The position numbers and the translations under genes were made by a program. This document shows, one piece after another, positions 4,405 through 57,577 of a stretch of DNA of 64,000 bases. The notes beneath the pieces are model-generated. The model was not told the origin of the DNA. It saw only the letters and a program-made list of their open reading frames with translations, and made no database searches. Source of the DNA: Rebecca billardiae RCC1528 (Eukaryota; Protista; Haptophyta); contig OZ251222.1 of the NCBI GenBank assembly GCA_965240325.2, positions 1 to 64,000 of the forward strand, in the 5' to 3' direction. Each line of letters opens with the position of its first letter. The stretch's first letter is position 1.

Positions 4405-4452
4405 TACAGTTTACTAAGAATAAGAGACGCACACAGCTCAGGCAGGCGAGAT
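4405..4452 (+). repeat. 48-bp dispersed repeat, copy 1
   Basis: TACAGTTTACTAAGAATAAGAGACGCACACAGCTCAGGCAGGCGAGAT, identical to 41381-41428 (-) and 57530-57577 (+). Confidence 0.97.
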
Positions 4453-4481
4453 ATTGTTGTAGTGCAGAGTACGAGAAATGC

Positions 4482-4680
4482 GTCGTCGCCCCCTCCACCC
4501 TTATCGCCGCCGCCGTCACCGCGGCCGTCACCACCACCGAGTCCACCGCCAAGCTCCCCAACCAGCCAGCCACCATTTCACCAAGGTCGCCACCGAGCCC
4601 GCCGCCGCCATCTCACCGCGATCGTCGCCTCCGAACCCGTGACCCTCGCCGCCACTGCCACCGCCGCTGCCGCTAATCGC
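4482..4680 (+). pseudogene. Decayed Ser-Pro (SPPP, extensin-like) coding fragment
   Basis: Translates SSPPPPLSPPPSPRPSPPPSPPPSSP, then shifts frame; resembles the intact tract at 32920-33380. Confidence 0.45.
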
Positions 4681-7179
4681 GAGCGACGTATCGTTGAACG
4701 CGTGCGCTCGACAGCAACGCTCAATCGACGGCAACCAGACTGACTGGGACAAGGGCACTGAGACTGGACAGCAGCGGCGGGCTAACTTCTCACTAGGCGT
4801 CGCGACTCGCGAGCGCGCTCAAGGTGACCGGAAGCGAGGTTGAGATACTCGCCGTCGTCGACTCGAGCGTAGCCGTCATCTTCGACATCCTCCACCGTGG
4901 GGCGAGTGCTGAGCTGGCTTCGAGGGTCGCCGACCTTGCTGATCTCGTCCAGGCCAGGTGAGCACCGCGCACGGCTGACATCCGCGCCGTGGTGGCGAGC
5001 GCCGCGCCACGGGCACGGCGGTCGTAACTAGCTGTGTCTGGCGGTAAGTAAGCGGCTATCGTGAGCCTTACTTCTGCGCGGGTCTGGTGACGGCGGCGAC
5101 AACGGAGGCAGTGCTGGCTGCTCAAGTGGCAGAGTGCTGGCGGTAGTGGCTGTGGCAGCGGCGGCGATGACGATGAATCCGCGTCAGATTCTGATTATCA
5201 GACTACGTGGGCAACGCTTGGCTTTGGCGACGGTTGTGCCGCGCCGCCGCCGCCGCCGCCGCGGTCCGATGCCGGCGGCGCGGCCCATCCGTGCGCCCGC
5301 GCGCAGAACAGCTCGTTTGCGCGGACTCATGGCGGCCTGAGCGAGCCTGGCTACCTTGACGACCTCATCGAGCGATTGCGCACTCGACGACGTGCCGAGG
5401 TCGCTGTTCTGCGGATGGCAGCGTCTCGTTCGGGCGCACACCACAGCAGTGTGCATCCGAGTCGGATGACGGATGCGAGCAGCTCAGAGAGGCACGACCA
5501 TGCCCAGTCGGGTGCGCTGTGCGGTGCCGCGCGAGTGCGAAGGCCTTGCCTTTCACGATTCAGATCGCTCACGTCACCCTCTCCGCGTCGACCCACTGCC
5601 CACGCGCTTCTCGCGCCGTCGCGCAGATCACTGCTCATCAGCTTGCAGCTCAAAGGAGACGATGCGGTCGCGGCAGTGCGCTGGCTCGTCGAGCTGACGT
5701 GCTGCAGTCGCGGCAGCTGGGCGCCAGCTTGGCAGCTCGTGTGTGCGCTGCTTCCGCGAGCAGCTACCGGCCTCCTTCAGCTTCGTGGGCAAGCGCGCGC
5801 GATGTCTTTCCGCGGGAGTGCGCAGGGCGCAGCTGCAGCAGCAAACGCATCGTGCTCGAACAGCGCGCGAGAAAGCGGCACGGGCGATTCGAGGCTCATT
5901 CGAGTCACGGTGACTCTGTCAGGGTATATACTCTCTACACCTCACCTTCCGAGCTGGCCACCCTGTCTTGAGTCTTCGCTTCCGCCAGCCATCCGCGCGC
6001 GCACATCGGCGGTGTTGACGGCTCGGTCAGCCAGTGCGCTGGAGGACGGGCAGGGCGAGAAGCTGCCGGCTGGCAGGAGAGAACTCTGACGCTTCTGACA
6101 GGGCGCTATATGTGTCTAGCTGTCTGCTGACATGTCCCAGTCGCCGCAGGCCCTCCGTGGGCTCGGCGCCATCGAGCCTCCCGCGAGCGACCCGCGAGGC
6201 GGGCGTCCGCCATGGCATTTTGTTGTCCGCGTCGCGCCGTCGCCGACCTCGGACCTGCTGCCTGCCACGCTGGGGCGTGTCATATTCACTGACGTCATCG
6301 GATGACGCCACCGCCAGGAGGACAGAGGGAGCACGGCCGAACTCGGACTCGTGTGAAGGTCCCTCCCACTGGGACCTTCACACGTCTCGAGGGACCTTCA
6401 CACGTTCGACGAGTGAAGGTCCCTCCGCTGGCGCCGCCCGTTGGCGCTGGATGGGATGGCCGCGTGCGTGCGCGAGCGCCCGCCTCGCGTCGCGCGCCCC
6501 GCGCGCAGAGCGCGCGCTCGGCCGCGCGCGACGCGGCGAAGTCGAGGCTGACATGCCCCTGGCCCACTTCGCGCCGCGCAACGCCGCCCACGCCCATCGC
6601 CGCTCGCACGCGCAGGCCTGCCGCGCACGGCTTGGGCTTTTCAGCACAGGCTGGCGGCGGCGCGCCGGGCCGAGGGCTCGGCCGGTGTTGTGCCCCTCGG
6701 CCAGGCCGAGACTTGGCGGAGGCGCGGGTAGTGCCATCGCCTGCCCAGATCCCGGGCCTCGCCGTCAGAGTGTGCACGCGAGGCGCGCTGTCGTGGTCGA
6801 CAGGTGAGGCGCCGCGTGCTCGCCCTCGAGCGGGCAGCGGACATACCGGCAGGCGCGCGCGCACACAGCGGGGCTGTCGAGCTGCTTCCGGCTGGTTAGA
6901 TCGACGGCGCGTGCCCTGGCCCTGGTCTGGGAGGCGTGCGCGGGTTCGGAGGCCGGTGAACGCTCGGCGCGGACCCACGTGTCTTGCCGGGCACGGTTGC
7001 GCGACAGCTCTGCAGCCAGTCTCGAGGCTGAGTGGCATCAGAGCGCTTGCCGGCGTGCTGGCGGGCTCAGCCGCCGGGCCGATGCCCACGCCTTGGCCGG
7101 GATGCGACCGGCCTCCGCGTCCTCCGCAGCCGCCTGGAGCCGTCGACCCGCTGCCCACGGCCCGCGGCCGGCAGGCCGC

Positions 7180-8120
7180 TTGGCGGATGGCCAGAGGAGC
7201 AGGCGGCCGAGCCGGCTGGGCGGCAGCGAGGGTGGTGGGGATGGAGGCGGGCTCGGCGGCGGAGGCGGCGGAGGCGGGCTTGATAGCGGGCTCGGCGGCG
7301 GCGAGGATAGCAGGTTCAGTGCTGGCGATGACGGTGGGCTTGGCGGTGAGCTCGGCGGTGGCTGACGTGGCAGACTTGGCGGTGGGATCGGCTGCCGGCG
7401 GCTTGGTGGCAGCGGAGGCGGCGGCGACGGGATCGAGCTCGGCGGCGTGGTCGGAGGCGGTGCTGATGGCGGCGATGATGCTAGCGGGCTTGTTGGCGGC
7501 GATGTAGGCAGCGACGGCTGCGGGCTCAGCGGCGGGCTTTGTGGCGGCGATGTAGGCGTTGATGACGGTGGTGGGCTCAGCGGCGGGGTCGGTAGCGGCG
7601 ACGGCAGCGGCAGGCTCGAGGTGGGCTTGGTGGCGGTGATGGCGGCCGGGCTCGGCTATGGACTTTGCGGCGGTGGGCTCGGGGGCGGAGTCGGTGGCGG
7701 CGAAGGTGGCGAACCCAGCGCTAGGCTTGGCGCTGGGGTGGAGGAGACGGGCTTGGTTGTCCGTGGTGGGCTTGGTGGCGGCGATTTGGCGATGATGGCT
7801 GTGAGCGGCGGAGTGGCCGTGAGCTCGGCAGAGGTGACGGTGGCTCGGGAACGGTGGCTGGCTCGGCGGCGGCTTCGGCGGCCGCGACGGAGACGGGCTG
7901 TGAGGCGGCTAGGGCGGTGGTGTGGGATGGGATTACTGCGTCACTGTTGCCCTCGGTCAGAGCTTGGCGGGGACACAGCGCGGCCAAGCTCCGGGCGTTG
8001 GCGCTGCCGCCAGGTCGGCCGCAGGCCACCCACTCGTCGGCAAAGCTTGGGCGGCAGCGATGCCCAGACATGAAGGAGGGCACTGCGGGATCGCTGCGTC
8101 ACCTCGGGAAGGCTGAGTCC
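7180..8120 (-). pseudogene. Decayed SPPP-rich gene fragment inside the long-TIR element
   Basis: Minus strand consists of degenerate CCGAGCCCGCCG repeats with frame disruptions. Confidence 0.55.
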
Positions 8121-8982
8121 ATGAGAGAGATGATCGGCACTGCCCCGTCTGGTGGAGTTCGATGAGCTGACTTAGACTACTTTTGCGACCGTAGGCTGCT
8201 GCTCGGCCTTGTCAGAGTCGACATCCGACCTAGCGCCAGCGCGGCGCAGTACGTATCGATTGAGTCATTGCGCGGACCAGCAGCATGAGACGTCATCGCG
8301 ACTCGGAGTTCGTCACGTGCCACTCAACCGCGTCCGACCCGCCCCACTGCCACCTTGGGCAGGCGCCTGCAGACGATACGGCGGGCCAGCATCATAAGCT
8401 GCGCTCCTGCTGAGTGCTGGCTGATGATGACTGCGTCAGACGACTGCGCATTGCAGCCGCAGCCATACCGTACATACGCTCTCAGCGGGACTACGCGCGA
8501 GTTGTTCTGCCTTCTAGCGGTGCCGGCACGTGGCGCGACGATTCTGGCGTCATTATCACTTGACGACTCGACTGATCACGACGAGTGGCCCTTCTCAAGC
8601 AAGTGCAGCAGCATTAGAAGTATAGCCTACACTCGTCCGTCGTCGTCTGGTTCCCCTGAGAAGTCTTCTGGAATGCATCAGCGACATGCTCCCGCAGCCT
8701 GGTCAGTGGTCCAAGCCAGTCACATCCGGCAGCCTGACATCATCCCACATGCCGCGTGGGCAGAGAGGCGCGCTATGCCCACGCGACTGGCTTCCTAGAA
8801 GCTGCCGTGACGGAACGAGTGTCAGCAGTGGACCGCCGGCCGGTGCCGCGCGCCGCACCGCCGGGCCCAATGGCAACGAACACCCGGTGGCCGGCGGTGC
8901 GGCCCTAGGCTAGTGCGGCGGATCTATCGCGTATAGAACGACCGGCCGTGACGCGCTCTGCACCACGTACATTCAGACGCGG

Positions 8983-10622
8983 CAATGAGCAGCATGCACC
9001 ACCGTCCGGCCGTCTCAGGTCGCTGTCGTCGGCAGCCAGCCGGTGCCGGGCACGGTGGCGCCGGGCGCTCGTAGCTGAAGGACCGCGATCAAGGATTGAT
9101 TGCCAAGTCGTCAGCCGACGACTGGGAAGTTGAGCCTGATGCTGCCCGCTGCCGGTTCGCGGGACGAATGACGAGCAGCCTATGGCCCGTGAACCTGCTT
9201 CAGCTCCTAGAACTCTTCCAGACGTGGTGAGGATATCCCTCACGAACTCAGCCCTCTCGCGCTGACGCAGCGCGTCTTGCGGCCTGCTGCGTGCCGCGAG
9301 CTATCGGACAGCGCGGCCCGCCGGCCGCGGGCCTTGGGCGGCGGGTCGACGGCTCCAGGCGGCTGCGGAGGACGCGGGGGCCGGTCGCATCCCGGCCAAG
9401 GCGTGGGCATCGGCTCGGCGGTTGGGCCCGTCAGCACGCCGGCAAGCGCTCTGATGCCACTCGAGACTGGCTGCCGAGCTGTCGCGCAACCGTGCCCGGC
9501 AAGACACGTGGGTCCGCGCCGAGCGTTCACCGGCCTCCGAACCCGCGCACGCCTCCCAGCCCAGGGCCAGGGCACGCGCCGTCGAGCTGCCCAGCCGCAA
9601 GCAGCTCGACAGCCCCGCTGTGTGCGCGCGCGCCTGCCGGTCCGTCTGCTGCCCGCTCGAGGGCGAGCACGCGGCGCCTCACCTGTCGACCACGACAGCG
9701 CGCCTCGCGTGCACACTCTGATGGCGAGGCCCGGGATCTGGGCAGGCGATGGCACTACCCGCGCCTCCGCCAAGTCTCGGCCTGGCCGAGCCTGCCACAA
9801 CGAGCAGCATGCACCACAGTCCGGCCGTCTCAGGTCACTGTCGTCGGCAGCCAGCATTCGCCGGGCGCGATGGCGCCGGACGCTCGCGCGCGATCAAGGA
9901 TTGATTGCCATCAAGTCGTCAGCCGTCGACTGGGAAGCTGAGCCTGATGCTGCCCGCTGCCGGGTCGCGGGACGAATAACGAGCAGCCTACGGTCCGTGA
10001 ACCTGCGTTAGCTCCTAGAACGCTTTCAGACGTGGTGAGGATCTCCCTCACGACCTCAGCCCTCTCGCGCTGACGCAGCGCGTCCGCTGCCACTCTACGG
10101 CCCTGCTTCCTGCTGCGTGCCGCGAGCTCTCGGACAGCCCGGCCCGCCGGCCGCGGGCCGTGGGCAGCGGGTCGACGGCTCCAGGCGGCTGCGGAGGACG
10201 CGGAGGCCGGTCGCATCCCGGCCAAGGCGTGGGCATCGGCCCGGCGGCTGAGCCCGCCAGCACGCCGGCAAGCGCTCTGATGCCACTCAGCCTCGAGACT
10301 GGCTGCAGAGCTGTCGCGCAACCGTGCCCGGCAAGACACGTGGGTCCGCGCCGAGCGTTCACCGGCCTCCGAACCCGCGCACGCCTCCCAGACCAGGGCC
10401 AGGGCACGCGCCGTCGATCTAACCAGCCGGAAGCAGCTCGACAGCCCCGCTGTGTGCGCGCGCGCCTGCCGGTATGTCCGCTGCCCGCTCGAGGGCGAGC
10501 ACGCGGCGCCTCACCTGTCGACCACGACAGCGCGCCTCGCGTGCACACTCTGACGGCGAGGCCCGGGATCTGGGCAGGCGATGGCACTACCCGCGCCTCC
10601 GCCAAGTCTCGGCCTGGCCGAG
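8983..10622. repeat. Diverged tandem duplication (~810-bp unit) inside the long-TIR element
   Basis: 8983-9790 and 9798-10622 both begin CAAyGAGCAGCATGCACCAC and end AAGTCTCGGCCTGGCCGAG; each unit includes the inner part of the TIR. Confidence 0.9.
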
Positions 10623-11325
10623 GGGCACAACACCGGCCGAGCCCTCGGCCCGGCGCGCCGCCGCCAGCCTGTGCTGAAAAGCCCAAGCCGTGCGCGGCAG
10701 GCCTGCGCGTGCGAGCGGCGATGGGCGTGGGCGGCGTTGCGCGGCGCGAAGTGGGCCAGGGGCATGTCAGCCTCGACTTCGCCGCGTCGCGCGCGGCCGA
10801 GCGCGCGCTCTGCGCGCGGGGCGCGCGACGCGAGGCGGGCGCTCGCGCACGCACGCGGCCATCCCATCCAGCGCCAACGGGCGGCGCCAGCGGAGGGACC
10901 TTCACTCGTCGAACGTGTGAAGGTCCCTCGAGACGTGTGAAGGTCCCAGTGGGAGGGACCTTCACACGAGTCCGAGTTCGGCCGTGCTCCCTCGGACAGC
11001 GCTGCTCAGACTATCAGACGACCTATTGATTAGCCTATTCGATCGACTCGACTCAGGCTTGGACGCATGGTCTGACAGGCCGTCCACTCTGGACGGTACT
11101 TGCGTACGACCCCCATAGCGTCGTATTATAATAATTGTACGACACGCGACGCTGAGACAGCGCCGCTTGGCTGCCGCGGCCCGCCGTCGGGCCGTCGCAC
11201 CGTGACCGTCGGTCAAGCCATACTTGAGAACACGGGGGCACGGGCTGAGTGCCCAGCGTCGCCGTGGGCCGCTCGGTCCGAGGCGCGCGCCGCGGCCGCC
11301 GCGCTGGGCGCCGCGCCGCCGCGCC

Positions 11326-12273: not shown

Positions 12274-12640
12274 GCAAGCCGCCGCCCTGCGCCCCCCGCG
12301 CCGCGCGCGCGTGCGCTGGCTTGCGGCCGGCGCAGTCGCCCTCGACGGACTTCGGCTGCCGACTGCGCTTGCACACCTTGCCTGCCGCGAGGCGATGAAG
12401 GCTCGTGTCTACCCGGCTCTCCACCATGCGGCCTGACGGAACTGCCGCAGCCAAAGGTTCGTCAGACCTCCATGGCGGACTCCACCTCGGCGGGCGTCGG
12501 CGGCACCCGCGGCCGGCGGGGATGCGGGCGGCCATGGACAGGCGCTCGCGGCAAAGGTGCGACGGGCTTCGGCATGCGCGCGCTCGACGCCCTCCGCCGG
12601 TGCTTCGCCCGTCGCCCGCACGCCGCTCGGGCTCAGCGGC

Positions 12641-16072: not shown

Positions 16073-16103
<31 letters not shown>

Positions 16104-25585: not shown

Positions 25586-25617
<32 letters not shown>

Positions 25618-30854: not shown

Positions 30855-31399
30855 GCCGACCCGCGGCCAGTGGGCGCCATCGCCACGATGGCGGGAACCC
30901 CGGGCCCACGTACCGTTGCTCGCCCCCGGCAGCAGCGGGGCCGTCCGGGGGCCGTCCGCGCCTCCGCCGGTGGTCGGCAGCGGTGGCGAGCAATGATCAG
31001 AGCTCAGTCAGGCTACTCGACTGAGCTGTCAGCCGTGTGCGGACCGCGCGAATCACAGTTCGCGACGTCGCCGGCGCGGCAGCTCACCGGGACAGTGAGT
31101 CTAAGGGCTCCGGCCGTCGCATTGTCCGACTCGGCGTCGATGATTCCTCGCCGGCTCGCCGCAGACTCGCTCGGCTGCTCAGCCAGCCGCCAGCCGGTGC
31201 AACTCACCGTGCAAGACGAAGTTTCTGATATCTGATGGATTTTACCCCCGTATTGATCGGAGATCACGTCGTATTTCATCTCGCGGCGGCCTCGTCCGCG
31301 CCTTTTCGGCGGGGCGCCAAGTGGGCAGCACTTGTTCAGCAGCGCGGCGCATCGTCCGCGCGACGCGCTACGGGCCACCGGCTACTGGTGAGCGCGACA

Positions 31400-34300
31400 A
31401 TGGCGCTCTCGCCGCTCGGCCCGCGCGGCCCGGCCACCAGCGCGCGCGCGCCTCGGCCGCGGGCGCTCGGCGCGCGCGTGCTGCTGTCGGCCGTTCTGCT
31501 CGCCGCGCGCACCGCGGACGCGCAGATGGGCTTGAGCGCTGGCTTTGAGCACACGTGTGCGCTCCGCACGGCGACGAGCGAGCTGTGGTGCTGGGGCGCG
31601 AATGCGCTGTGGCAGCTTGGTTTGGGTGACGAGGAAGCGCGCGGCGACAGCACCGGCGAGATGAGCGGCAACCTACCGCCGCTGAATCTCGGCAGCGGCC
31701 TTTCGATCCTGATGGTGAGCAGCGGCGGCGGCACCTCGTGCGCGGTCGTCAGCACAGGCTTCAGCAACAGCCTCAAGTGCTGGGGCGCGAACTCGGCCGG
31801 GCAGCTCGGCAAGGGGAGCACGGCGTTCCGCGGGCCGCCGAACGCCACGCTCGGCGACAGCCTGCCCAGCGTCGACCTCGGCGGCGAGGCGGAGCCGCTC
31901 GCTGTCTCGGTCGGACACGACGAGTCGAGCGGCGGCTCTCACGTGCTCGTGCTGCTGCTCGGCGGCGAGGTGAAGGCGTTCGGCGCGAACGCGTTCGGGC
32001 AGCTCGGGTACAACGACGTGGCCGATCGTGGCTCCCAGCCGTCGGACATGGGCGGGGCCAATCTCCCGCCCGTCGTCTTTGCGCCGCCCGAGGGCGGCCA
32101 GTCCCTCCGGCGGCTGCGCGAGCTCGGCGGCGCCGCGCCGGCCGAGCGCGGCGCGCGCGCGCGCCGGCTGCAGCCGACGCTGCTTGTCGAGGGCGTCGCC
32201 GCGGGCGGCGCGACGTCGTGCGCGCTCAACCTTCAGTCGAGCCGCGAGCTCTACTGCTGGGGCCGCAACACGCACGGCCAGCTCGGCCTGGGCGACACCC
32301 TCGCGCGCGGCGCCGCGGACGGCGCGTACGCTGTCGGCTTCCTCAGCCCGATCGCGCTGCCGGCGCCTCCCGTCTCCGTGGCGGTGGGGCAGGCGCACGT
32401 GTGCGCCGTGGTGCAGGGCGCCGGGCTCAACGTCTCCGTCGCGTGCTGGGGCAACGGCGCGAGCGGCCGGCTCGGCTCGGGCGGCGTCGCCAACCTCGGC
32501 GACAACGCGGGCCAGATGGGCGACCAGCTGCCCACCGTGCAGCTGCCCGGGCTGGCGGGCGCGCCGGCCGAGGCGTGCGCGGGCGAGGCGCACACGTGCG
32601 TGCGGTACGCGAGCGGCGAGGTGGTCTGCTTCGGCGCCAACGTGGACGGCCGGCTGGGCTACGGCGACACCGCCGGGCGCGGCGAGACCAGCGCCACGAT
32701 GGGCACGTCCCTCCCGGCGGTCGTGGCGCCCGACGAGCTGCCGGCGACGGCGCTGGCGTGCGGCGACAGCTGGACGTGCGTCGCGCTCAACGGCTCGGCG
32801 GTGTACTGCTGGGGCGCGAACGGGCGGGGCCAGCTCGGGCAGGGCGACGTGGCCTCGCGCGGTGACTCGGACGTGACCAAGGTGAGCACCCTGCCGCAGG
32901 TCGAGCTGGGCGCCTTCTCGCCGCCATCGAGCCCGCCGCCACCGCCACCGCCGACGCCGCCGCCGAGCCCGCCGCCGAGCCCACCGCCGAGCCCGCCGCC
33001 GAGCCCGCCGCCGAGCCCACCGTCGTCGCCCCCGAGCCCGCCGCCACCGCCGCCGCCGACGCCGCCTCCGAGCCCACCTCCGAGCCCGCCGCCGAGCCCG
33101 CCGCCGAGCCCGCCGCCAAGCCCGCCGCCGAGCCCGCCGCCACCGCCACCGCCGACGCCGCCTCCAACCCCGCCACCGAGCCCGCCGCCGAGCCCGCCGC
33201 CGAGCCCGCCCCCGAGCCCGCCGCCGAGCCCACCGCCACCGCCGCCGCCAACCCCGCCGCCGAACCCGCCGCCGAGCCCGCCGCCGAGCCCGCCGCCGAG
33301 CCCGCCGCCGCTCCCGCCGCTGTCGCCGCCGCCGCTGCTGCCGCCGAACCCCTCGCCTCCGTCCACGCCGCCGCCGCCCGACCTGGGCGGCGCGCCCCAG
33401 CTCGTGTCTGTGAGCCTGGGCGAGGGGCTGGACACGATCGGCGCCGTCTTCGACCGGAGCACCAACCGGGGCGGCTTCGAGGTGGGCGAGAGCTTCGAGT
33501 GCGACAAGCTCTTCTCCACCGCCACCAAGCAGCGGCTCAGCTCGGACAGCGGCGGCGGCGACGCGGTGTGCGAGTGGCTGAGCGATTTCGCGCTCGTCGT
33601 CACGCTGCCCTCCGGCGTGGCGGCGCCGACCGACGCGGAGATCGGCGCGAGCGGCGCGGAGTCTCAGTTCTCGCTCGAGTTTGCGGCGGGCAAGATCTGC
33701 TCCGAGGCCTCCGAGGAGGACCAGTACCTTGAGACCGCCCGGGGGGAGAAGGGGCTGGGCGGCCTCGACGGGCTGGGCGGCGGCGGGCTGGGCGGCTGGC
33801 AGCCGGGCTCCAACCCGGCCGCGCTCGCGGGCGGCGGGCGGCGCGTGCGCGCCGTGCGCGCGGCGCGCGCGCTCATGGAGGAGGGCGGAGGCGGCGGCGA
33901 CGAGCCCGACGGCGGCGGGGGCGGCGGGGGCGGCGGCGGCGAGGAGGACTACAGCGCCAGCTCGACCGACCTGGTGTGCCCGGACGGCGTCGGCCAGCGG
34001 CGCAAGGTGGAGGGCCCGTCGGCGATCTCGGAGAGTGCGCAGCCGAGCGTGTCCGCGCTGCTCGCTCCGTCCGCGCACGCCGTCTGCCTGCCGCTCACGG
34101 TGTACGCGCCCTCGAGCGACGGCGGCGGCGCGTTCGGCGCGCTGTACAGCTGGAACGCGTCGGTCTCGCAGCCCGCGGCGTGCGCGCTCTCGCCCGGCTG
34201 CGCCGCCGCCCTGGCCAACCTGCGGCAGGTGGCGGCGAGCGCGCAGAGCCCGGCGCTCACCGTGCCCGCGGCCGCGCTGGACGTCTCGATGGGGGCCCTC

Positions 34301-37214
34301 TCGCTCGAGCTGCTCGTGGGCGTGCCGTACGGGGAGGAGTACGCGGCGCAGGCCGCGGTGGTCGGGCTGACCAGCACGCCGCTGCCCGCCGTCTCGATCA
34401 GCTCCGCCGCCGGCGCGAGCTGGCGCACCTCCACCCAGCTGCGGCTCGAGTCGAGCGCGCGGCTGGCGAGCGGCACCGGCTGCGCCGGGCCGGCGGTCGG
34501 CGGCTCTCTGGGCTACCTGTGGGAGCTCAGCCCGGCGCTGTCGGCGGAGAAGGCGGCGCGGCTCGCGGCGGGCGCGCTGAGCAAGCCGACGCTCGTGCTG
34601 CCCGCGTACACGCTCACCCCCGGCGTGACGTACACCATCACGCTCACGGTGAGCACCGCGACTGAGCTCTCCAACTCGGCGAGCACGACTCTGGTCGTGC
34701 TCGTGCAGGGCGTGCTCGCGACCATCAGCGGCGGCGGCGCGCGCGTGGTGGGCGCGGGCGGGGCGCAGCTGGCGGTGGACGCGAGCGCGTCGCGCGACCG
34801 CGACGCGCAGGGCGCGAGCCTCACCTTCGCGTGGCAGGGCCTCGACGCGCTGCGCTGCGAGCCGCACGACGCCAACAGCACGGGCGCGGGCTCGGACTGC
34901 ATACAGGCGGGCGACGCGAGCAGCGCGCTGCTCGGCCTCCGCCCGCTGGCCAACGGCTCGTACCCGCTGAGCGTGACGGTGGCGGCGGCGGACGGGCGCG
35001 AGGACACGGCGTCGCAGCTGCTCACCGTCGTCGCGGGCGCGCCGCCCGTCGTCACCATCGCCGAGCTCCCCACCGAGAACGCCGAGCCTTCGCAGAAGCT
35101 GCGGCTCTCAGGCTCGGTGTTTGAGCCGATCACGAACGCAGACCTGCGCCGCTCGCGCGACGTGCGGCTGCTGTGGTCGGTGGACGACGGCGGCGACGCC
35201 GGGCTCGAGCTGGGCTCGGCGCAGACGGTCGCCAGCCCGCTCTCCGTCGCCGACCTCGTGCTGCGCGCCAACGTGCTCGCGGCGGGCGAGACGTACTCGC
35301 TGCGGCTGAGCGCGACGTTTGGCGGCGTGACCGGCTTTGCGGTGCTCACGTTCAGCACGAACGCGCCGCCGCGCGGCGGCGTGTTCAGCGTGTCGCCGGA
35401 CTCGGGCGTGGGCCTCGACACGGAGTTCACGCTCGCGATGGTCGGCTGGGACGCGGACAACCTGCCGCTGCGCTACGCCTTCAGCCGGCGCAACGGCCGG
35501 CCGTCGCGCGGCCCGACCGACCAGTTCTCCGTCACGCTGCGCGCGAGCAGCCTCACGCCCATTCACAGCACGACGCTGCCCTCCGGCCGCGGCGGCGGCG
35601 GGGCGCTGACGCTGGTGGGCTCGGCGGTGGACCAGCTCGACGCGACGGTCACGCTCGAGCGCACCGTCACCGTCTCCGCGCCCGACGGCACCGCCTCCGG
35701 CGCGGGCGCGACCGCGTACGTGCGCGGCGTCGTGGACGCGCGGCTGTCGTCGCTGCTCGGCGCCTCGTCCGCGAGCGAGGTGGCCAACCTCGCCTCGTCG
35801 AGCGCGTCGCTGCTGAACGACGAGGAGGACGCGGACGACGGGACGCGGCGCGCGCTGCGCGGCGAGCTGATCAGCGCGCTCGACGTCGTCGCCTCCGCCG
35901 ACACCACCGCCGACTCGGAGAGCCTGGGGCTCGTGCTGGGCGCACTCGAGGAGCTCGTGGGCGCCCCCTCCGAGCTGGACGCGGGCGCGCGCGCGCAGGC
36001 GGCGGGGCTGGCGAGGAGCCTGATGAGCTCGGCGCGGAGCGAGGGGCTGGACGAGGCGGGAGCGAACGCGACGGTGAGCGCGCTCGCCTCGCTGCTTGAC
36101 GGCACCGTCGAGGGCGGCGACTCGGACGAGGACGCGTCCGCCGTCTCGTCGATCGTGCAGGAGGCGCTGGCCGACCTCGGCGCCGCGCTGCTGCTGGACG
36201 CGCTGGCGTGCGAGGAGGCGACGAGCGTCGTGTCCGGCTCGATCTCGATCAGCGCGGCGCGCACGCTGTCCAGCTGCCTCGCCGACTCGACGCAGACCGC
36301 GCCCGAGCTCGAGGAGGACGAGGACGGCGTCGCGGGCCCGTCTGCGCAGTTTGGCGCGGCGCTCGAGTCGGAGGCGCAGATCCCGTCGGAGGAGGAGTTC
36401 GATCTCGAGCTGATCTCGTGGCTGCTCGACCCGCACGAGGCGGCGGCGCGCGAGGCGGGCTCGGAGACGAACCTGAGCGCGCGCGTCTTCTCCGTCCGGC
36501 TGCTCGACTCGAGCGGCGACGAGATCGACGTCGACGGCCTCGCCGAGCCCGTGGCGCTCACGATCCGGCCGGCGGACGGCGGCAGCTTTGGCGACGTGGG
36601 CGGCGCGCGCTGCGACGCGGACGAGGACTGCAGCGGCGGCGAGGGCGCGGGCGAGGCGGGCGGCGCGTGCGTGCGCGGCGCGTGCGTGTGCAACGCCGCC
36701 TTCTCCGGGCGCACGTGCGCGCGCAAGCAGCGCTGCGTCTTCTGGGACGAGCAGGAGCTCGAGTGGAGCGACGACGGGTGCGAGGTCGCCTCGGTCTCGG
36801 CGGGTGCGGTCGTGTGCAAGTGCACGCACCTCACCGACTTTTGCGTGCAGGTGAACACGCTGAGCGCGGCGCAGATCGGCGCGGCGGCGCTGGCGATCTT
36901 CACCGGGCGCGTGTTCGTCGCCTCGCCCCTCGCCGCCGCGCTCGTCCTCGCCGTCCTCGGCATCGCCCTCGGCGGCGCGGCGGTGCTGCACGCGCACGAC
37001 TTGCGCACGCCGCACGCCGGCGCGCCGCTGCGCTGCGTCGCGGCGACGCGGCGCGCGCACCTGCGCGTGCAGGCGCGGACCGACCTGGCGCTGCTGCTCC
37101 GGCGCACGCGCGTGCTGCTCAGCGCCGCCAGGCGCCGCGGCCGGCGCGCCGCCGGCGAGCGCGGCGAGCGCGTCGGCGCCGGCGGCGCGCGCGTCGTCGT
37201 GCGCGCGCGGCGGC

Positions 37215-37253
<39 letters not shown>

Positions 37254-40200
37254 CGGACTCGGCCGCGGGCGCGGGCCGAGCGGGCGCGGGCGCGCGCGCG
37301 CTCTCGCGCGCCGGGCTGAGCTCGTTCGGCCTGCTCTCGCACTGCGCGTGGCGGCACCCGCTGATCGCCTCGCTGCTGCAGGACGACTCGCGCGTGTACC
37401 GCGCCGAGCAGTGGGTCGTCCTGTGGACCGGGCTGATGCTGGAGATGCTGTTTGTTTTCATCTTCTTTGACCTGAGCGAGGCCGGCGCGGGCGCGGACGC
37501 GGACGCGGGCGCGGACGGCGACGCCGATCCCGACGCGGCGGCGTCGTTCTGGCGGCCGCCCAGCGCGTCGGTGTTTGTGGCGTTCCTCATCGTGCTCGCG
37601 CAGAAGCTCTTCTGGGACATCCTCGTCGCGGGGCGGCTGATGGCGTGGGCGCACCACGCGGAGGGCGCGCGATGGCAGGAGCTTGCCGCGCGCCGGCGCG
37701 TGCGCGCGCTCTCGGCGCCCTCGCAGGGCGCGCTGCGCGAGCTGCTCGTGCTCTCCGCCGACCGCAAGCTCGCGGCGGTGCGCGCGCTGCACGCGCTGTG
37801 CGCCGAGCGCGGCCTGCCCTTCGCGCCGTGGCGCGACGCCTTCCGCGCCGCCGACGCGCCGCCGGAGCGCATGCCGCGGCTGCTCCGCACGGTGGGCCGC
37901 GCGATCACGCGCCGCGCGCCGACGTCCGAGCCGCCGCCGCCGCCGCCGCCGGCGCCCGGCGCGTTCCCCGCGGCGCGGCGCGGCGGCGAGCGCGGCTCCG
38001 GCTTTGTCTGCGTCGTCTCCGACGCGCGCGCGTACTCGGGCGTGCTCCGCGCCCACCGCCCCTCGCCCGGCGCGCGCGCCGGCCCCGCGCGCGGCCGCGC
38101 GCGCTCGCTGGTGGTCGAGAGAACCGCCGAGCGCGCGGCGGTGGCGGCGCTGCTGCAGGCGCCGGACGAGGAGCGGGAGGCTGTGCTGCGCGTGCTGCGC
38201 TCGGCGATCCGGCCGATCGAGTGGCAGGCGCTCGCGATCGCCGCGGCCTCGCTCGCCCGCGGCGAGGGCGACGGCCTCTCCTCGCCCTCGCGCGCGCGCG
38301 GCGCGGCGCGCGCGCGCGCTGGCCTGGGCTGGACGCGCGCGCGCACATCCGTGTTCGAGCGCGCGGGCTGGGCGGCCATGCTGGCGGCGTCCGCGCAGAG
38401 CGTGCGCGCGGCGCGCGACGCGCCGCAGAGGATGCCGCTCGGCCGCGCGCTCACCGCCCGCGCGCCCGGCGGCGGCGGCAGCGCCGCCGCCGACGGCGCC
38501 GCCGCGGGCGGCGCGGCCGGCGCGCCGCGCGTGCGCGCCCTGCAGCGCCCGCTGCTCGCGCTCGTTGCCGACGTGCGCCACGCGGCGTTCGAGGCGGGGC
38601 GCGCGGCGGAGGAGGCGCGCGCGCCCGCCGACGCGCGCGCCGCCGCGGCCGAGCGCGCGCGCCACCTGTGGGCGCTGACCACCGCGGCGGTGGCCGCGGT
38701 GCGCGCCCTCGACGAGGCGGCGGCAGCCTCCTCCTCCGCGCGCGCGCCCACCGTCGCGCTGCAGAGCTCAGCCGCGGCGCTCTCGGCGCGCGGCGCGGGC
38801 GCGCCCGGCGCGCCGTCGGCGCGCGAGCGGCGGCGCGCCGCGCTCGACGCGGCGCTGCGCGAGCTCGAGCTCGCGAGCCAGGCCGCGGCGCAGGTGGCCC
38901 TGCTGCCGCCGACGACGGCGGCCTGGGAGCTGCGCGCCGCGGCCGCCGCGGCCGCCGCGGCCGCCGTGCTGCCGAGCCGCAAGCCGTCGCACGCGGCGCG
39001 GAGCGCGGCGCGGCCGTCGGCGGCGGCGGCCTCGGCCTCGGCGGCGGGCGCGGCGTCGGGCCAAGGCGCGGCGCTTCCGCCACCCGCGCCCGCGCCGCCG
39101 CCGACGCCGACGCCGACGCCGCCACCGCCCGCCGCCGACGCCGCCGCGGACGGGACTGGCGGCCCCTGCTGCGCGCTCGGCGCGCTCGGCGCACTCGGCC
39201 GGCCGCGCGGCGTGTCGCGCGCCGCCGAGCTCGCCGAGCTTGCGGTGCACAAGCGCTGGCTGGTCGAGTCTGACGAGGGGCTGCTCGGGCTGTGGGCGCG
39301 CGTGCCGGAGGGGGCGCTGCACGGGCCAGCCGCCGCGCCCGCGCAGCCGCCGCGGCAGCAGCACCACCGCCTCCCCGCCAGCGCGGCCACTCCCAGCGAG
39401 CTCCCCGCGGGCGGCGCGCCGCGCGCCGCTCTCGCCGTGCGCTTTGTGCGCCTGGCGGGCCTAAGGTACAAGCTGGGCGCCCGCGCGCCCATCGAGCTGA
39501 ACGCGGCGTCGTGGCTGCGCGACGAGCTGCAGGCGGTGGACGTGGACCCGCGGCGGCACGCGCTCTCGGCACACCGCTCGAGCACGCGCTACCTCGCCAG
39601 ATACGATCTGGGCGAGGTGCGCGCGTGGCTGGGGCGCGCGCTCGAGCCCGCCGATGTGGTGATGGACGCGGCGTGGGCGACCGCGAGCGTGCTCGCCGCG
39701 ACGCGGCACCGCGCGGAGCGGCGCGCGCTCGCCGAGTTCTCCGCGCTGCACACGTTCGTGCGCCTGCGCCCGCGCCCCGCCTTCGCGCCCGGCACCGCCG
39801 TGCACGCCGCCGTCCTTGCCGAGCTCCGAGACTCGGGCGGGCGCGCGGCGCGGCTCGGCGCGCGCTGGGCGCGCACCGGCCGCGGCGTGCGCATCTCGCT
39901 GCACCGGCGCACGCTGCCCACGCTCACGCCGCACGCGGACGGGGCGGCGGACGCGGGCGGCGGCGGCGCCAAGCCCGCCGCCGCGCCGCGCGCCGCCGGC
40001 GCGCCGGCCGAGGCCGCGCGCGCGCGCGCGCACGCCGGCGGCGCGCGCGAGGCGGAGGCGGACCTCGCGGCCGCGCGCGCGGCCGTGCTCGCGGCCGACG
40101 CGGAGGCGCTGCGCGGCGCGGGCGTGCAGGTGGGGCCGCACGCGCCGCTGCGGCTGCTGCGCGTGCACGTCGCCGGCGCCGCGCCCTCCGCGCGCGAGAC

Positions 40201-41348
40201 GCACGCCCCCGCCCGCAGCCTGCTCGCGAGCGTCGGCCTCGGCCGCCGCGCGCAGCCGCCCGGCCGCGCGCCCGTGCACGTCATCTACGCCGTCGAGGGC
40301 GTGCGCACGGCAGCGGACGTGGGCGGCTCCAGCTACGTGCGGGCGGTGACGCACCTCGGCTCGGTCGCGCTCGCCGCCGACTCGGCGGGCGCGCTCGCGC
40401 TCGGCCGCGCGCTGCAGAGCCGGCCGCTGCTGTGCTACGCGCAGCCGACGCGCGCGCCGCCCGCCGACGCGGCCGCGGCCGAGCGCGCGGACGCGGCGGC
40501 CGACGAGGGCGCTCTCGCCGAGGAGATGGTCGCCCTAGTCCACCTGCCGCCCGACGTGGCGGCCGAGGTCGAGGCGGAGGCGGCGCGCGCGCACCTGCGC
40601 GTGCTCGTGCGCGCGTGGCGGCGCGCGCGCGGCGCGCGGCGGCCCAGCGCGGCCGCAGCCGCCCGCCGCGCCGCCGGCGGCGCGCCGCCCGTTGCGAACG
40701 CGGCCGACGCCGACGCCGAGGCGGAGGCGGAGCTGGCGGCGGAGGAGGGCGGGATCGAGATCGACTCGCGCATGCTGTGGTCGCGCGCGGACGACCTCGC
40801 GCTCTCCGCCCTCGACGCGCACGGCGTGCCCACCGCCGTGCTCTCGACGCTGCAGCCCTACGGTGCGCGCGCGACTGCTCCGCACGCGCGCGCGCGCCGC
40901 CGCCGCGCCGCGCCGCGCCGCGCCCGCCGCCGCACGCCTGACCCCGCGCTCCGTCGGACTCGCGCGCGCATGCACTGCCTGTGCCCGCGGGGCGCGCGCA
41001 GGCAAGGGGCGCGTGGTGATGTGGCGCGTGCGCATCGTCATGCTGTGCGTGTGGGCGGTGCTCGCCGTCTCCGCCTTCTTCGTCCTCGCGTACGCGCTGC
41101 AGCCGTCCTTCTACGGCGACACGTGGGTGTCGGTCTTCCACGCGTGGGCGCTGGACACCGCGTCCGAGTTTGCGCGCGAGCCGCTCGTCGTGGCGGGGAA
41201 GGCGCTGCTGCAGCTGCTCGTCGAGGCGCTCGTCGCGCTGCCCGCGTGCCTCGTCTGCCTCGCCGCGATCGGGTGCGACAAGCTGATCGGCGAGCGCGAC
41301 ACGGTCGACCACGGCGTCACCGTCCTCGACCAGGTCATGGAGCTGTGA
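31400..41348 (+). CDS. Giant polycystin-1/REJ-like receptor with RCC1-like repeats, SPPP stalk, REJ module, EGF and GPS motif
   Basis: Signal peptide; about 7 SAGxxHTC/CWGxNxxGQLG repeats; SPPP tract; NAPPRGGVFSVSPDSGVGLDTEF (REJ); CVRGACVCNAAFSGRTC (EGF); GPS CVFWD..WSDDGC..CKCTHLTDF; several TM helices; intron 40863-41001 leads to a final TM exon ending at 41348. Confidence 0.85.
32920..33380 (+). repeat. Coding minisatellite (CCGAGCCCGCCG)n encoding an SPPP stalk
   Basis: Tandem 12-bp units read directly from the sequence. Confidence 0.95.
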
Positions 41349-41380
41349 CGAGTGTGAAGCTTGTGATGATGCAAGGTGAG

Positions 41381-41428
41381 ATCTCGCCTGCCTGAGCTGT
41401 GTGCGTCTCTTATTCTTAGTAAACTGTA
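41381..41428 (-). repeat. 48-bp dispersed repeat, copy 2
   Basis: Exact reverse complement of 4405-4452. Confidence 0.97.
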
Positions 41429-44135: not shown

Positions 44136-44202
44136 GAAACCCGCAAAAGGTCGTTGTGTCGTAACACACGCGCACGTCCACACGCCCGACGACGACAGCA
44201 CC

Positions 44203-52307: not shown

Positions 52308-52805
52308 GCCGCATACTTTATGCCCCATGCTGAAATTCGGACGCAATCCCGGCGGACCTGCATGTTCCAGGATTCAAGCCGCAAGAAATCCAAGGCATCA
52401 AGATCCGAAGGGCCGCCGAGGGGCCGAGTGCTCGTCTGTGCTCCGGTTCCTCTGGCGGCCGCTGACATCAGACATGTCAGTCGCTCGGGAGGCCGGGCTC
52501 AGCCGTATTCACGCGGTCTCAGCAGGTGTCTCAGAGCTGTACACGCGGGAGCGTCTATGGCATGCTTCATGAGCTAAGCGGACGGTGGAGTACATGCAGC
52601 ACAGACAGGCAGCGGCCGCTTGCAAGCTCAGCACGGTGCCGCTCCGAGCCGCTGGTGCCACGCGGCGCACGCCCGCTGAGGACTGAGCCGCGCACGCGTG
52701 CACGACCCGGAGACGTGCGCGCTGCGATGGTGCGTGGTGCGCCGTGGCCGCTTGGAGGGGCAGTGCACGGCGCGGCCAGCGAGCGCGGCGTGGTGCGGTG
52801 CGTGC

Positions 52806-54107
52806 TCACTTCATGGCGGCGTCGAGGCCCTGCTCGAACACCGTCAGCGCCCTGTCCACGTTGTTCCACTTGTCCAGCCCGAAGAGGCCGATGCGGAAGG
52901 TGGTGAAGTCGCTCGGCTCGCCAATCATCAGCGGCACGCCCGCGGCGATCTGGAAGGAGGCGTTGTTCTTAAACTTGGCCGCGTACGTGGCGTCGGGCGC
53001 GTACACGACGGCGACGCCGGGCGCCTCGAACCCCTTCTCCGCGACCGAGCGGAAGCCGCGCGCGTACATGATCTCGCGCACGCCGTTGCCCAGCCGCCAG
53101 CACTCCTTCTCGACCGTGTCGAGCCCTACGCCCTCCGTCTCCTTGAGCACCTCGTGGAAGGTGCGCAGGGAGTCGGTGGGCATCGTGGTGTAGTAGGAGA
53201 AGGCGCCGTCGAGGTACGTCTTCATCACCCCGTGCCACTTGCCCAGGTTCGCCACGAACGAGCCGCACTTGCGCCCGGCCTTCTCGTCCGCCTCGAGCAT
53301 CGCGCGCGCGCGCTCGCTCACCATCACGATCGCGCTCGACGCCGGGCCGGTCCAGCCCTTCTGCGGCGCCGTCAGGTAGCAGTCGACGCCGAGCTTGCCC
53401 ATGTCGACCCACGCGGCGCCGGAGGCGATGCCGTCGAGCACGAACACCGCGCCCACCTCGTGCGCCGCCTTCGCCACGCGCGCCACGTACTCGTCCGGCA
53501 GGATGATGCCGGCGGACGTCTCGACGTGCGGAGCGGCCACCATCGCGGGCTTCTCGCGCCGGATCGTCTCCTCGACCTCCTCGATGGGAGGCGGGGCGAT
53601 GGCGGGCTCGGAGCCCTTGGCCCAGCTGATGCCTGGCGCATCCGCCGATGCCGTCCCCACCGGCCGCCCCTTGAGCACCGTCACGTTGCCGTTGCCCAGC
53701 TCGTCAAAGATCTGCGACCACCGGTACGAGAAGTAGCCGTTGCGGATCACGACCGCCTTGCGGTCGTGGCCGGCGAAGGCGCGCGCCGCGGCCTCCATGC
53801 CGTACGTGCCCGAGCCCGGGATCAAGACGCAGTGATCCGTGTTGTACGCCGTGCAGAGGCTCGCGTGCAGATCCTTCATGATCGACTGGAATGGCGCGCT
53901 CATGTGGTTGAGCGCGCGGTCCGTGTACACGACCGAGAACTCCTGCAACCCGCCGTTCGCGTCGATGATCTCGTCCGGGACGACGCCGCGCTGTGTCGCC
54001 GTCGCGACGCGCGTCGCCGCCGCCGAGCTCGCCGCCATCGTCGCCGCCCGCCGCGTGGCGAGCATCCGGCCGGCCGACGCCGCGGGGGGGGCCAAGTGCT
54101 TCAACAT
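52806..54107 (-). CDS. Class-V PLP aminotransferase (alanine-glyoxylate/serine-pyruvate type), probably mitochondrial
   Basis: IPGSGTYGMEA, RNGYFS, HVETSAG, VLDGIAS, PLP lysine in TAPQKGW, FRIGLFG; Arg/Ala-rich presequence. Confidence 0.92.
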   Translation of the reverse strand: MLKHLAPPAASAGRMLATRRAATMAASSAAATRVATATQRGVVPDEIIDANGGLQEFSVVYTDRALNHMSAPFQSIMKDLHASLCTAYNTDHCVLIPGSGTYGMEAAARAFAGHDRKAVVIRNGYFSYRWSQIFDELGNGNVTVLKGRPVGTASADAPGISWAKGSEPAIAPPPIEEVEETIRREKPAMVAAPHVETSAGIILPDEYVARVAKAAHEVGAVFVLDGIASGAAWVDMGKLGVDCYLTAPQKGWTGPASSAIVMVSERARAMLEADEKAGRKCGSFVANLGKWHGVMKTYLDGAFSYYTTMPTDSLRTFHEVLKETEGVGLDTVEKECWRLGNGVREIMYARGFRSVAEKGFEAPGVAVVYAPDATYAAKFKNNASFQIAAGVPLMIGEPSDFTTFRIGLFGLDKWNNVDRALTVFEQGLDAAMK

Positions 54108-55036
54108 CTTGTTCGGGTGGCGTTGCGCAACGCGCTGGGTCGCGGTGTAATTGCGCGCGCAGATTCTCTCGCGCGCACCTGGACGTGACGTCGAGAGCAT
54201 AGATATGGGTGGGTAACCTCCGTGGCTCCGCCAGCCAATCAGGCGAAAGCACCCAGGTCGAGTCAATAGTGAGGAAGCGAGCCGCCGAAGCTTTGTCAGC
54301 GACGAAGGCGAACGGCATCGCTGCACCGAAGCCCCACCAACCTTCGTCGCCCAGTTTTGCCGCCCCCGCCCTGGTCCTTTGATTTGCGACGAGGTTCCCT
54401 CCCCCTCAGGTAGGGTGTCACTTTCCACGGGACGAGGCGGGGCCATCAGGGGGTCGTGCACGGGAAGGGGTCGTCTCTGTGAGCATATCGGGTAGCTTCA
54501 AACGATGCATGCACAGCCCTCGCGGCGGCGCGTCTGCTCAGCTGCCCGCTTCCAGCCGCAAGCTGAGTGCCGTGTCGAGCTGTTAGACCATCGGAATCTG
54601 TGCGCTCTCTCTCGCGCGCAGGCTGACGCCTGTGACGCAGTCGACTTCTCGCACGCACGCAGATTTGCAGCGTTTTATTTGAGGGCAGAGCGATTGGTTA
54701 CCACTGGGCAGGCACGACAGGTCGCCGTTGGCAGCTGCTGGCAGCCGAGCGACCGCAAACGCCGCTACTCGGATCATGGCACGCATCGCCACTCCACTTC
54801 TGCGCGAGTCGACCGCGCGAGTCGCCCGCAGTGCACGCGCTGCGCCCATTCTCCACATGCCGCTCAGCAGAGTGCGCGGTGCGGTGAAACGCGCCGCGCA
54901 CATGGACGCGTCCCGGCTCCCAGGCGTTGATGATGGCGGCGGCCGGCCGGATGAAAGGATGCGATGGGCGTCCGGACCGCGGCGGCTGGCAAGTGTGTTT
55001 AGGCCCAGCGCTTTTGCAAGCGCCGGGTGGCCCGCC

Positions 55037-56786
55037 ATGTCGTCGTCGGCGGATCAGGCGCCGGGCGGGGACCGGCAGCCGCTGGTGCAGCACCACCATC
55101 CGCTGCAGGAGGCCAGCGATGATCTTGAGGTCGGCCCTCCCGCGCGGCCCTCCGAGGAGTCAGCTGCGGGCACCCCTGCTGTGCCTGCGCTGCCTGCCGC
55201 GCCCACTGCCGAGCCGGCTGCGGACGCGGGCGCGATCGTGCCAGCGCAGGGGCGGGACGACGCGGGCGGCGCGGGCGGGCCGACCGCGCCGCCCGCTGCG
55301 GCCCCTGCCGCAGCGCCCGCCGCCGAGCCGCCCACGCCGACGCCGTGCGACGAGCTCGCGGTGCGCGTGCTGATGGGCGCCGCGCTCAAGTCGCTCGGCC
55401 TGACGCACCTCGCCCTGCTCGTGCCGCCGGCGGTGATGGCGCTCATCCTCGTGATGAAGGTGATGGCGTTCGTCGCCGGGCTGCTCGTCTACTTCGCCCC
55501 GGCGACGGCCGCGAGCGCGTGGCTCACCGCCATCCTGTGGCTCGCCAACCGCGCGATGCACCGCGCGGTGGTCGCGCGCAGCGACCGGCGCGGCCTGCGC
55601 GGCCTGTTCGTGTCGCTGCTGGTGCACGTGCCCGCCGCGTGCCTCCTCCCGTCGTTCGGGCCCGCGCTCGCGTTCAAGGACGCCCTGCACGCCCACCGCA
55701 CCGTCTGGCGCGTGGGCTCCCTCGACCTGCTCGTGCGCGTCCTCTCGATGACGGCCAAGGTGCGTACCGTCTGACAGTGTGCTGCGCTGCACTGCCGCAC
55801 AACCGCCACCGCGCGCACCGCCGCGCGCACCCACCCGCGCACGCCGCGCGCCACGCGCCGCACGCGCGCGCGCCCACGCCGCGCGCCGCGCTGCACGCGC
55901 CGCGCCGACGCGCCGCGCCGCGCCCGGCCACAGGTGGGCTTCACCGCGTGCTGCCAGCCGCCCGCGCTGGACGCGCGCCGGCTGGCGCCCCTCTTCCAGC
56001 TGTGGGAGGTGGGCGTGGGCGTGGTGCGCACGCTGCTGCCCGTGGCGTTCTGGCTGCACTGGCTGTGGTTCGGGCTGTGGCAGCTCGACATGTGCGCGGA
56101 GCCGAGCGACCCGGTGGAGTACACGCGGCGCGCGCACGTGCGCATGAGCTCGGTGGAGGAGTGCGCCGCCGCCGACGGCTGGCGCCACTTTGCGCTGTAC
56201 TGGGCAGCCGCCGCCTACCTGCCGTGGAAGCTGGCCAACGTGCTCGCGGCGCTCGGCGCCGTCGCCGCCTGGCTCGGCCGCAGCAAGCGGCCGCAGGTGG
56301 TGCGCGCCGCGCGCGCGGGCCGAGCGCGCGCGCCCTGCTCCCTCCAAGCCGCCGCCGCGCCCCGCCCTCCTCCTGACCACCCCGCTGCCGCGCGTGTGCC
56401 GCGCGTGTGCCACGCGCGTGCCGCGCCCGTGCCGTGGCGCTCGTGCGCGGCAGCCGTGCGGCCGGTATGCGAGCGAGGAGGAGCTGAGCGCGCTGGGCGA
56501 GGACACCACCTGCTCGATCTGCTACGAGGAGCTGAGCCGGCCGGTGGCGCTGACGCCGTGCAAGCACATCTTCTGCGAGCAGTGCCTCGTGCTGTGGGCC
56601 AACCGAGAGCCCGGCGGCTCGCGCACCGCGGGCGCGGGCGCGAGCGGGCGGATGCGCACGTGCCCCCTCTGCCGCTCGCCGATCGACGAGGCGAGCGAGC
56701 AGGGCGCGGTCGGGGACGCGCGCAAGTTCACGCACGACTGGTACCGCGCCGACGGCACCACGCCGCTGCACCCCCAGCTGCTGTGA
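55037..56786 (+). CDS. Transmembrane C3HC4 RING E3 ligase, RNFT1-like
   Basis: Several TM segments, then CSICYEE..PCKHIFCEQC..RTCPLCR; introns 55760-55933 and ~56300-56453. Confidence 0.8.
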
Positions 56787-57153
56787 GCGTCGGCGCGGGC
56801 TGTCAGATGCTGGCGCAGGCCCCAGGCCGCCAACGCCCATCGGCCAACGCCCTGGCAGCGTCATCTGCACCCGCTCATTCGCCGATTCATTCGCGCGCGA
56901 ACCGGAACGGCGGGCGGGACGCCGAACGCACGGTGCGATTATTGCTGCCACAAGGCTGCGTTGACGCAGCCTGCCGGCGCATGCACGAAGACTCGAATGT
57001 ATCGTAGTCCTTGAGAGTCGGGCCGCCGTGCCTTGCGCACTCAGAGTGCCCGGTTCGGGCACTGCAGAGTGGCCACGGGCCGCCACGTTGTCGTTGAGTG
57101 CAGAGTCGGACTAGCTCAACTGCTCTGTCTGCTCGTTTCACTTTCGGATGCTG

Positions 57154-57157
<4 letters not shown>

Positions 57158-57214
<57 letters not shown>
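57158..57214. repeat. (TA)n microsatellite
   Basis: Uninterrupted TA dinucleotide run; shorter runs near 115, 445, 23576 and 57338. Confidence 0.98.
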
Positions 57215-57219
<5 letters not shown>

Positions 57220-57529
57220 ACTGATCAACACGAAACGGTGTCTTATTGCACTAGCAGCACTCAGCGTCTCTGTGTCTGGCGAGTGGCGGGGTCTGTCAGT
57301 GACCGGCAACTACGCTAATAAGTGCTGAGCTCACCGCTATATATATATATATAATTGAAGATTTGAGATTTCCTGGCAAACTTGTCGCGGTGCGATGACC
57401 GTAGTCCTTACTGAGTTACTGCTGATGTAAATCATCTGCTAGTGCTACTATTAGAGTTAACTACGACGACAGCAAGCAGTCGCCAGCTAGTACCGCCGTG
57501 TAACTTTTACGCAGTCAGTCAGTAGTCAG

Positions 57530-57577
57530 TACAGTTTACTAAGAATAAGAGACGCACACAGCTCAGGCAGGCGAGAT
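57530..57577 (+). repeat. 48-bp dispersed repeat, copy 3
   Basis: Identical to 4405-4452. Confidence 0.97.

Follow-up and report, generated by a model that had tools for sequence, protein, structure and literature searches.

An identical 48-bp unit at three intergenic sites of Rebecca billardiae is the 3' end of a 10.5-kb LINE with a truncation hotspot in a predicted hairpin loop

The window analyzed here is a stretch of 64,000 nucleotides from the haptophyte Rebecca billardiae RCC1528 (contig OZ251222.1, positions 1 to 64,000), in which one 48-bp unit, starting with TACAG and ending with GAGAT, is present as three exact copies at 4405–4452 (plus strand), 41381–41428 (minus strand), and 57530–57577 (plus strand). 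No further match occurs within the window at up to three mismatches, 100 shuffles of the window contained none, and the G+C content of the unit is 46% compared to a window average of 72%. In reverse complement, the unit corresponds to the 3' end of a non-long terminal repeat retrotransposon (long interspersed nuclear element, LINE) of ~10.5 kb, and each copy is very probably an extremely 5'-truncated, dead-on-arrival insertion of a single young LINE family. In the list of copies, and throughout, nucleotides of the LINE tail are counted from its 3' end.

4405 to 4452, LINE sense on the minus strand: 48-bp stub corresponding to the last 48 nt of the LINE, an exact match identical to nt 1–48 of the full-length reference tail.
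41381 to 41428, LINE sense on the plus strand: 48-bp stub corresponding to the last 48 nt of the LINE, an exact match in the gap between convergent genes.
57530 to 57578, LINE sense on the minus strand: 48- or 49-bp stub corresponding to the last 48 or 49 nt of the LINE, for which the BLAST alignment to the reference reaches nt 49.

The three exact copies, and the sharp stop of each at GAGAT(T) against unrelated flanks, bear out what an earlier note on this DNA had described. The right flank of copy 1 (attg) has no relation to the LINE, the T at 57578 beside copy 3 could belong to either the element or its flank, and a BLAST search with the reference element found no other parts of the parent LINE in the window. 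The positions relative to genes given in the earlier note also hold. A minus-strand open reading frame (ORF) assigned to Pfam Sel1 (E 2.8e-75) has its ATG (4047) 357 bp from copy 1, which lies upstream of it, and copy 2 begins 32 bp beyond the TGA (41346–41348) of a large plus-strand gene. Copy 3 precedes by 75 bp the ATG (57653) of another plus-strand gene, for which the proposed POT1 identity was not confirmed by Pfam. A minus-strand gene following copy 2 was considered and rejected, as codon-position GC and the true stop codon show a plus-strand gene that ends at 41348. It should be noted that a mechanically called ORF of 3,386 codons (31235–41395) extends 15 bases into the copy 2 stub; the last ~100 codons of this ORF are an off-frame read rich in Arg and Ala, and the real frame of the gene closes with LDQVMEL and the stop at 41348.

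The search of the whole genome for copies and longer parents, which the earlier note had proposed, covered 72 Mb in 41 contigs and returned 749 matches to the 48-mer at up to three mismatches, from which 30 oriented copies were used to compare flanks. On the TACAG side the flanks of these copies are unrelated, and a weak ~14-bp extension that copies 1 and 2 had appeared to have in common on this side is attributed to chance. Conversely, the GAGAT side in many of the copies continues into one common sequence (TGACGCCCGCCAACTG...), for distances that differ between copies. Combined, these observations identify TACAG as the true terminus, the invariant 3' end of the LINE (sense strand, ...AGTAAACTGTA-3'), and GAGAT as one of many stopping points, at which the element is truncated on its 5' side. 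Walking out from the longer copies gave ends at 541, 556, 586 ... 2,000, 3,300, 4,600, and 6,000 bp, and reached two full-length copies of 10,530 bp that are 99.8% identical to each other. Opposite to the strand of the unit, the long copies contain a single giant reading frame. In one copy this frame stays open over 3,371 codons, between a 5' leader of ~90 nt and a 3' untranslated region (UTR) of ~360 nt. The predicted protein has a reverse transcriptase (RT) domain (Pfam RVT_1, E 1e-25, 91 bits) and, ~480 residues N-terminal to it, an Exo_endo_phos domain (30–31 bits, cut-off 24.5) that by its sequence is the putative APE endonuclease. The closest solved structures to the RT are those of the R2 and LINE-1 ORF2 reverse transcriptases, and the neighbors of the protein in the ESM Atlas are APE and RT proteins. 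With one constant end and a parent encoding APE and RT on the opposite strand, the unit can be assigned to the last 48 nt of a LINE, and the overall pattern is that of a textbook LINE with mostly dead-on-arrival copies. Thus, among the candidates of the earlier note, the 3' end of a heavily truncated retroelement was correct, the idea of a high-copy and recently spread sequence stands, and that of a micro-element does not, as the unit is not self-contained. The caution that it might simply be the end of a catalogued transposable element was right in substance, in that the end of a transposable element is what it is.

The LINE family itself looks unusual in its size of 10.5 kb, its single ORF, a 2A-like GEAKNPGP directly before the APE domain, and a long C-terminal extension with a GDCLLLAAMG-type Cys motif. 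RNase H-like and zinc-finger-like motifs after the RT domain are candidates recognized by eye. These motifs were read in an element spanning L071 and L069 (G000:C12, ~1140162–1150698; ORF residues ~806–818 and 2538), in which a second motif of the NPGP type, DPNPGP, occurs inside a Cys/His motif that follows the RT. Both full-length copies also have a 127-bp tandem duplication inside the frame (L065, ~8196–8442).

The ends of the parent bear on whether the unit could instead be a solo end, or a miniature inverted-repeat transposable element (MITE), of a DNA transposon, as the start in TACAG (TA/CAG, for Tc1/mariner) or in ATC on the other strand (for a Helitron 5' end) had suggested. TIR transposons and their MITEs, including Tc1/mariner, have an inverted repeat at both ends, a TA duplication, and a DDE transposase in the parent, and Helitrons are marked by 5' TC, 3' CTRR, a subterminal hairpin, insertion between A and T, and a Rep/helicase in the parent. 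Some units do form inverted pairs (L028/L029 and L056), but there is no partner end, unrelated host DNA lies past the truncation points, the ends of the full-length copies are unrelated, without terminal or inverted repeats, and the insertions show no TA duplication. The parent encodes APE and RT and not a DDE transposase or a Rep/helicase, and the variable end that would have to be a Helitron terminus is a truncation point, such that the likelihood of a DNA transposon origin is negligible.

A query of 48 nt is blind to copies shorter than itself, and exact 24-mers were therefore counted along the tail.

Tail nt 1–24: 763 copies.
Tail nt 19–42: 1042 copies.
Tail nt 25–48: 925 copies.
Tail nt 28–51: 454 copies.

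The lower count for nt 1–24 results from variation between copies in the last few bases. Moving 3 nt across GAGAT/TGA lowers the count by 471, approximately half of the copies extending to nt 48, compared to a drop of 117 over the 6 nt before. Among ~45 longer copies, 2 have a C at nt 49, and perhaps 20 of the 471 losses are therefore variants and not truncations. About 450–470 copies, ~45% of a family with at least 1,000 insertions, end at nt 48–50, and a 36-mer over nt 41–76 still finds 355 copies at up to two mismatches. The profile is built from the four exact counts and ~65 copies that were read; in the sample, lengths of 33, 39, 42, 46, 47, 48 (seven copies), and 49 nt (ten copies) are followed by 55, 55, 56, 56, 57, 59, 62, 62, 65, and 94 nt and then by scattered values, and extension past GAGAT elsewhere in the genome ranges from 7 bases to 10.5 kb. 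The sharp end is real, but it is a hotspot within a continuous truncation series and not the edge of a discrete element. Identity among long copies is 94.5–100%, so that identical 48-mers are expected without the strong constraint that the earlier note had offered as an alternative. A metagenome scan with the 48-mer returned no match.

The same series bears on the reverse possibility that the 48-bp unit is an independent dispersed target, with the LINE inserting site-specifically at its GAGAT end and the solo units being unoccupied sites. Such an arrangement would account for approximately half of the units being solo and for every longer copy adjoining the unit at the same base. However, copies of 33, 39, 42, 46, and 47 nt have the same TACAG end, and a 28-mer of the tail has 931 matches compared to 749 for the 48-mer. 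Further, tail variants with indels travel together with the LINE body (L035 and L046), the tail recurs in a distinct version in a second LINE family, a predicted hairpin pairs nt 29–44 inside the unit with nt 52–65 outside of it, and nothing else would explain how 48 bp came to be dispersed. A dispersed target is largely refuted on these grounds and is considered highly improbable.

The hairpin in question is a local structure predicted at nt 29–65 of the tail in the sense RNA, and appears alike in folds of 120 nt and 360 nt. Its predicted stems comprise 14 bp, the inner at nt 37–44/52–59 and the outer at nt 29–34/60–65, and enclose a 7-nt loop (sense UCAAUCU, nt 45–51). One G-U pair is specific to the sense RNA of the LINE and would become an A-C mismatch in the antisense strand. 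The hotspot at nt 48/49 coincides with the center of the predicted loop, at a CA/AA step, and the minor length classes (55–57, 59, 62, and 65) fall in the distal arm. A second LINE tail family (TACAGTTTACTATG... / TACAGTTTACTATGTTTTAACGTGCACACTTGGTTAAGGCGTGATTGACGCC...) has the last 12 nt and the GGCG-GATTG-CGCC core in common with the first. This second family was seen at loci L066:-1409, L004:221, L046:-983, and L020:1548 and numbers at least 293 copies in the genome; short stubs of it are found as well, and its sub-variants GATTGA and GATTAA are both common. The case for the hairpin comes from local pairing and conservation in this second family, not from statistics. An Rfam search of the tail and the 5' end returned no meaningful match to a known ribozyme or RNA family.

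If this LINE operates as LINEs generally do, the endonuclease would nick low-GC DNA and the nick would prime reverse transcription from the 3' end of the RNA, with most events ending early; a 48-nt product would then be connected to the far side of the break, with no duplication of the target. The hotspot could arise if the RNA template is cut in the hairpin loop, if a single-stranded cDNA hairpin is cut in its loop, or if the enzyme fails to leave the hairpin that it binds. Several results weigh against this combined account of truncated insertion and a hairpin hotspot. Target-site duplication is not above chance, with a mean flanking repeat of 3.13 bp in the 30 copies and 3.15 bp in mismatched-pair controls, and none was found in the two full-length copies, which upholds the earlier note on this point. 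The LINE has neither a poly(A) nor a simple-repeat tail; both this type of tail and target-site duplication are common, but not universal, in LINEs. Shuffles of the 3' UTR fold as well overall as the 3' UTR itself (z ~-0.4), and a hotspot that is centered on the loop, and not on the stem base, does not fit simple stalling on structure. Over the same 3 nt, the second tail family drops from 293 to 233 copies (60 copies, 20%, with the TTAA variant allowed for), a loss that has no baseline and makes a hotspot there suggestive only.

Simple stalling on structure is the least attractive of the possible causes, as the stop falls in the loop and not at the stem base, and as the related R2 reverse transcriptase is reported to copy through stable structures, with its short products ascribed to other causes (PMC11194090). 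Structure-only stalling was rejected on the overall fold and the position in the loop, as was microhomology, for which there is at most one ambiguous T. It can be tentatively proposed that the 48/49-nt class is the discrete product of RNA or cDNA cut in the apical loop of the recognition hairpin of the enzyme, with the tail still integrated, and possibly with a host nuclease or small-RNA-guided slicing as the agent of the cut. Should this be the case, nearly half of the insertion attempts of the family, and perhaps of its sister family, would be recorded as 48-nt scars, from which a single step of target-primed reverse transcription, or a host restriction that affects this step, could be read out naturally across the genome.

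A related but unlikely explanation is that a discrete 48-nt tail RNA, a 3' fragment cleaved by a host nuclease or small-RNA slicing, is copied as a template of its own, in which case the stubs would be run-off, 'micro-SINE'-like by-products of a 48/49-nt template, as opposed to abortive copies of the full-length RNA. The sharpness of the class boundary (925 to 454 copies over 3 nt), its location in a single-stranded loop at a CA/AA step, and the one-base overlap of head-to-tail stubs, as predicted by end-to-end template jumps, are consistent with such an RNA, as is the observation that LINE reverse transcriptases are not readily halted by structure (PMC11194090). However, classes of 33–47 nt and 55–65 nt occur as well, the tail matches no known ribozyme or RNA family, and tandem stubs would result equally from re-insertion at the element's own TAC(AG) start, given that right flanks often begin with (T)AC. 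A short interspersed element (SINE) in the strict sense was also rejected. SINEs combine a Pol III promoter head, derived from tRNA, 7SL, or 5S, with a LINE-like tail, and the stubs contain nothing besides the LINE's own final 48 nt; an Rfam search of the tail detected neither a tRNA nor any other family.

The distribution of insertions across the genome offers additional context for truncated LINE copies. The flanks (±60 bp) of the 30 copies have a GC content of 54–55%, compared to 72% in the window, and none of the 30 lies within sequence of coding-type GC periodicity, so that insertions sit in low-GC non-coding gaps. Relative to the gene on the side to which the unit points, nine copies have the same orientation and eight the opposite, revealing no bias. 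Past the truncated end, 17 of the 30 copies have A as the first base, frequently as part of (T)AC.

These data also address whether the unit is a spliced-leader relic, a constrained promoter or RNA motif, or a leftover sequencing adapter, the last two having been raised in the earlier note together with a recombination site, which is not supported. Some copies are positioned 30–540 bp upstream of genes in the same orientation (e.g., copy 3), and the copies are identical in sequence. A spliced leader would be attached to many different mRNAs and would always share the orientation of the gene that follows it, but the orientations here are balanced, copy 2 follows a stop codon, and the commonest continuation of the unit is the antisense of the LINE 3' UTR. 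At hundreds of loci the unit runs on into the coding element of 10.5 kb, which argues against a leader and an adapter alike, and there is no Rfam match; a 9-base resemblance to the Tn5 mosaic end is attributed to chance. Any of these origins is accordingly regarded as exceedingly improbable.

Stubs are in places arranged in clusters, including those at L036/L037. Head-to-tail stubs with a one-base (T) overlap occur at G000:C1:5016676–5016770 and at L036 and L056, and head-to-head stubs meet at their TACAG ends, 1 bp apart or overlapping by TA (e.g., L028/L029, G000:C1:4189487–4189583). This clustering suggests either insertion at the LINE's own terminal sequence or template jumping. At L070 (~4800–5110; G000:C5:119349–119650), 4 kb from a full-length copy, one copy of ~200 bp and another of 94 bp lie in opposite orientation, with the truncated end of each adjoining that of the other. 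L036 (G000:C9:3531–6670) and L037 (G000:C8:3345440–3348579) are 99.9% identical over 3.1 kb including their flanks, indicating that part of C8 is present a second time at the beginning of contig C9. Across ten listings of LINE-family matches, contigs C2, C4, and C6 had none and C9 nearly none, compared to dozens each on C1, C3, C5, and C7. C2, C4, and C6 may be of another origin or status, such as another organism or an alternate haplotype.

The immediate consequence is mainly one of annotation. Approximately a thousand short identical motifs beside genes should be masked as LINE stubs, rather than interpreted as leaders, promoters, transposon ends, or assembly artefacts. It might be conjectured that, through hundreds of identical 48-bp tags in their untranslated regions, genes could become linked to any small-RNA silencing directed at the LINE. 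The cause of the hotspot, if found, would bear on how the RT exits its recognition structure or on host cutting of the template.

In comparison with other LINEs that leave dead-on-arrival copies, the constant 3' end, the variable 5' end, the predominance of copies that fall far short of the coding element in length, the parent with APE endonuclease and RT, and the exclusion of copies from coding sequence are all alike. The present family differs in that ~45% of copies are 48–50 nt long and stop at one hairpin-loop point, and in the lack of a poly(A) or microsatellite tail and of a detectable target-site duplication. The trypanosome L1Tc/ingi LINEs contain 2A-like peptides, and the NPGP motif found here (GEAKNPGP), a putative 2A judging from its residues, is likewise located directly before APE in a single long ORF, though the present element is far larger and has the long C-terminal extension with a Cys motif. 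In the 'stringent' LINEs, such as eel UnaL2 of the L2 clade, the reverse transcriptase recognizes a stem-loop in the 3' UTR. To our knowledge no truncation hotspot in a hairpin loop has been described for stringent LINEs, and searches of the literature for a loop-centered truncation hotspot found no relevant report. Recognition of the 3' UTR is also reported for R2 (PMC11194090). As in UnaL2 and R2, a conserved hairpin is located tens of nucleotides from a specific, non-poly(A) 3' end, and here the hairpin loop and the terminal 12 nt are common to two LINE families of one genome; unlike in those systems, binding of the enzyme to the hairpin is proposed by analogy. The kind of repeat is ordinary, and its wider interest is confined to the truncation hotspot in a conserved 3' UTR hairpin loop: what this analysis adds to the known systems is the size of the 48–50 nt hotspot and its place in that loop.

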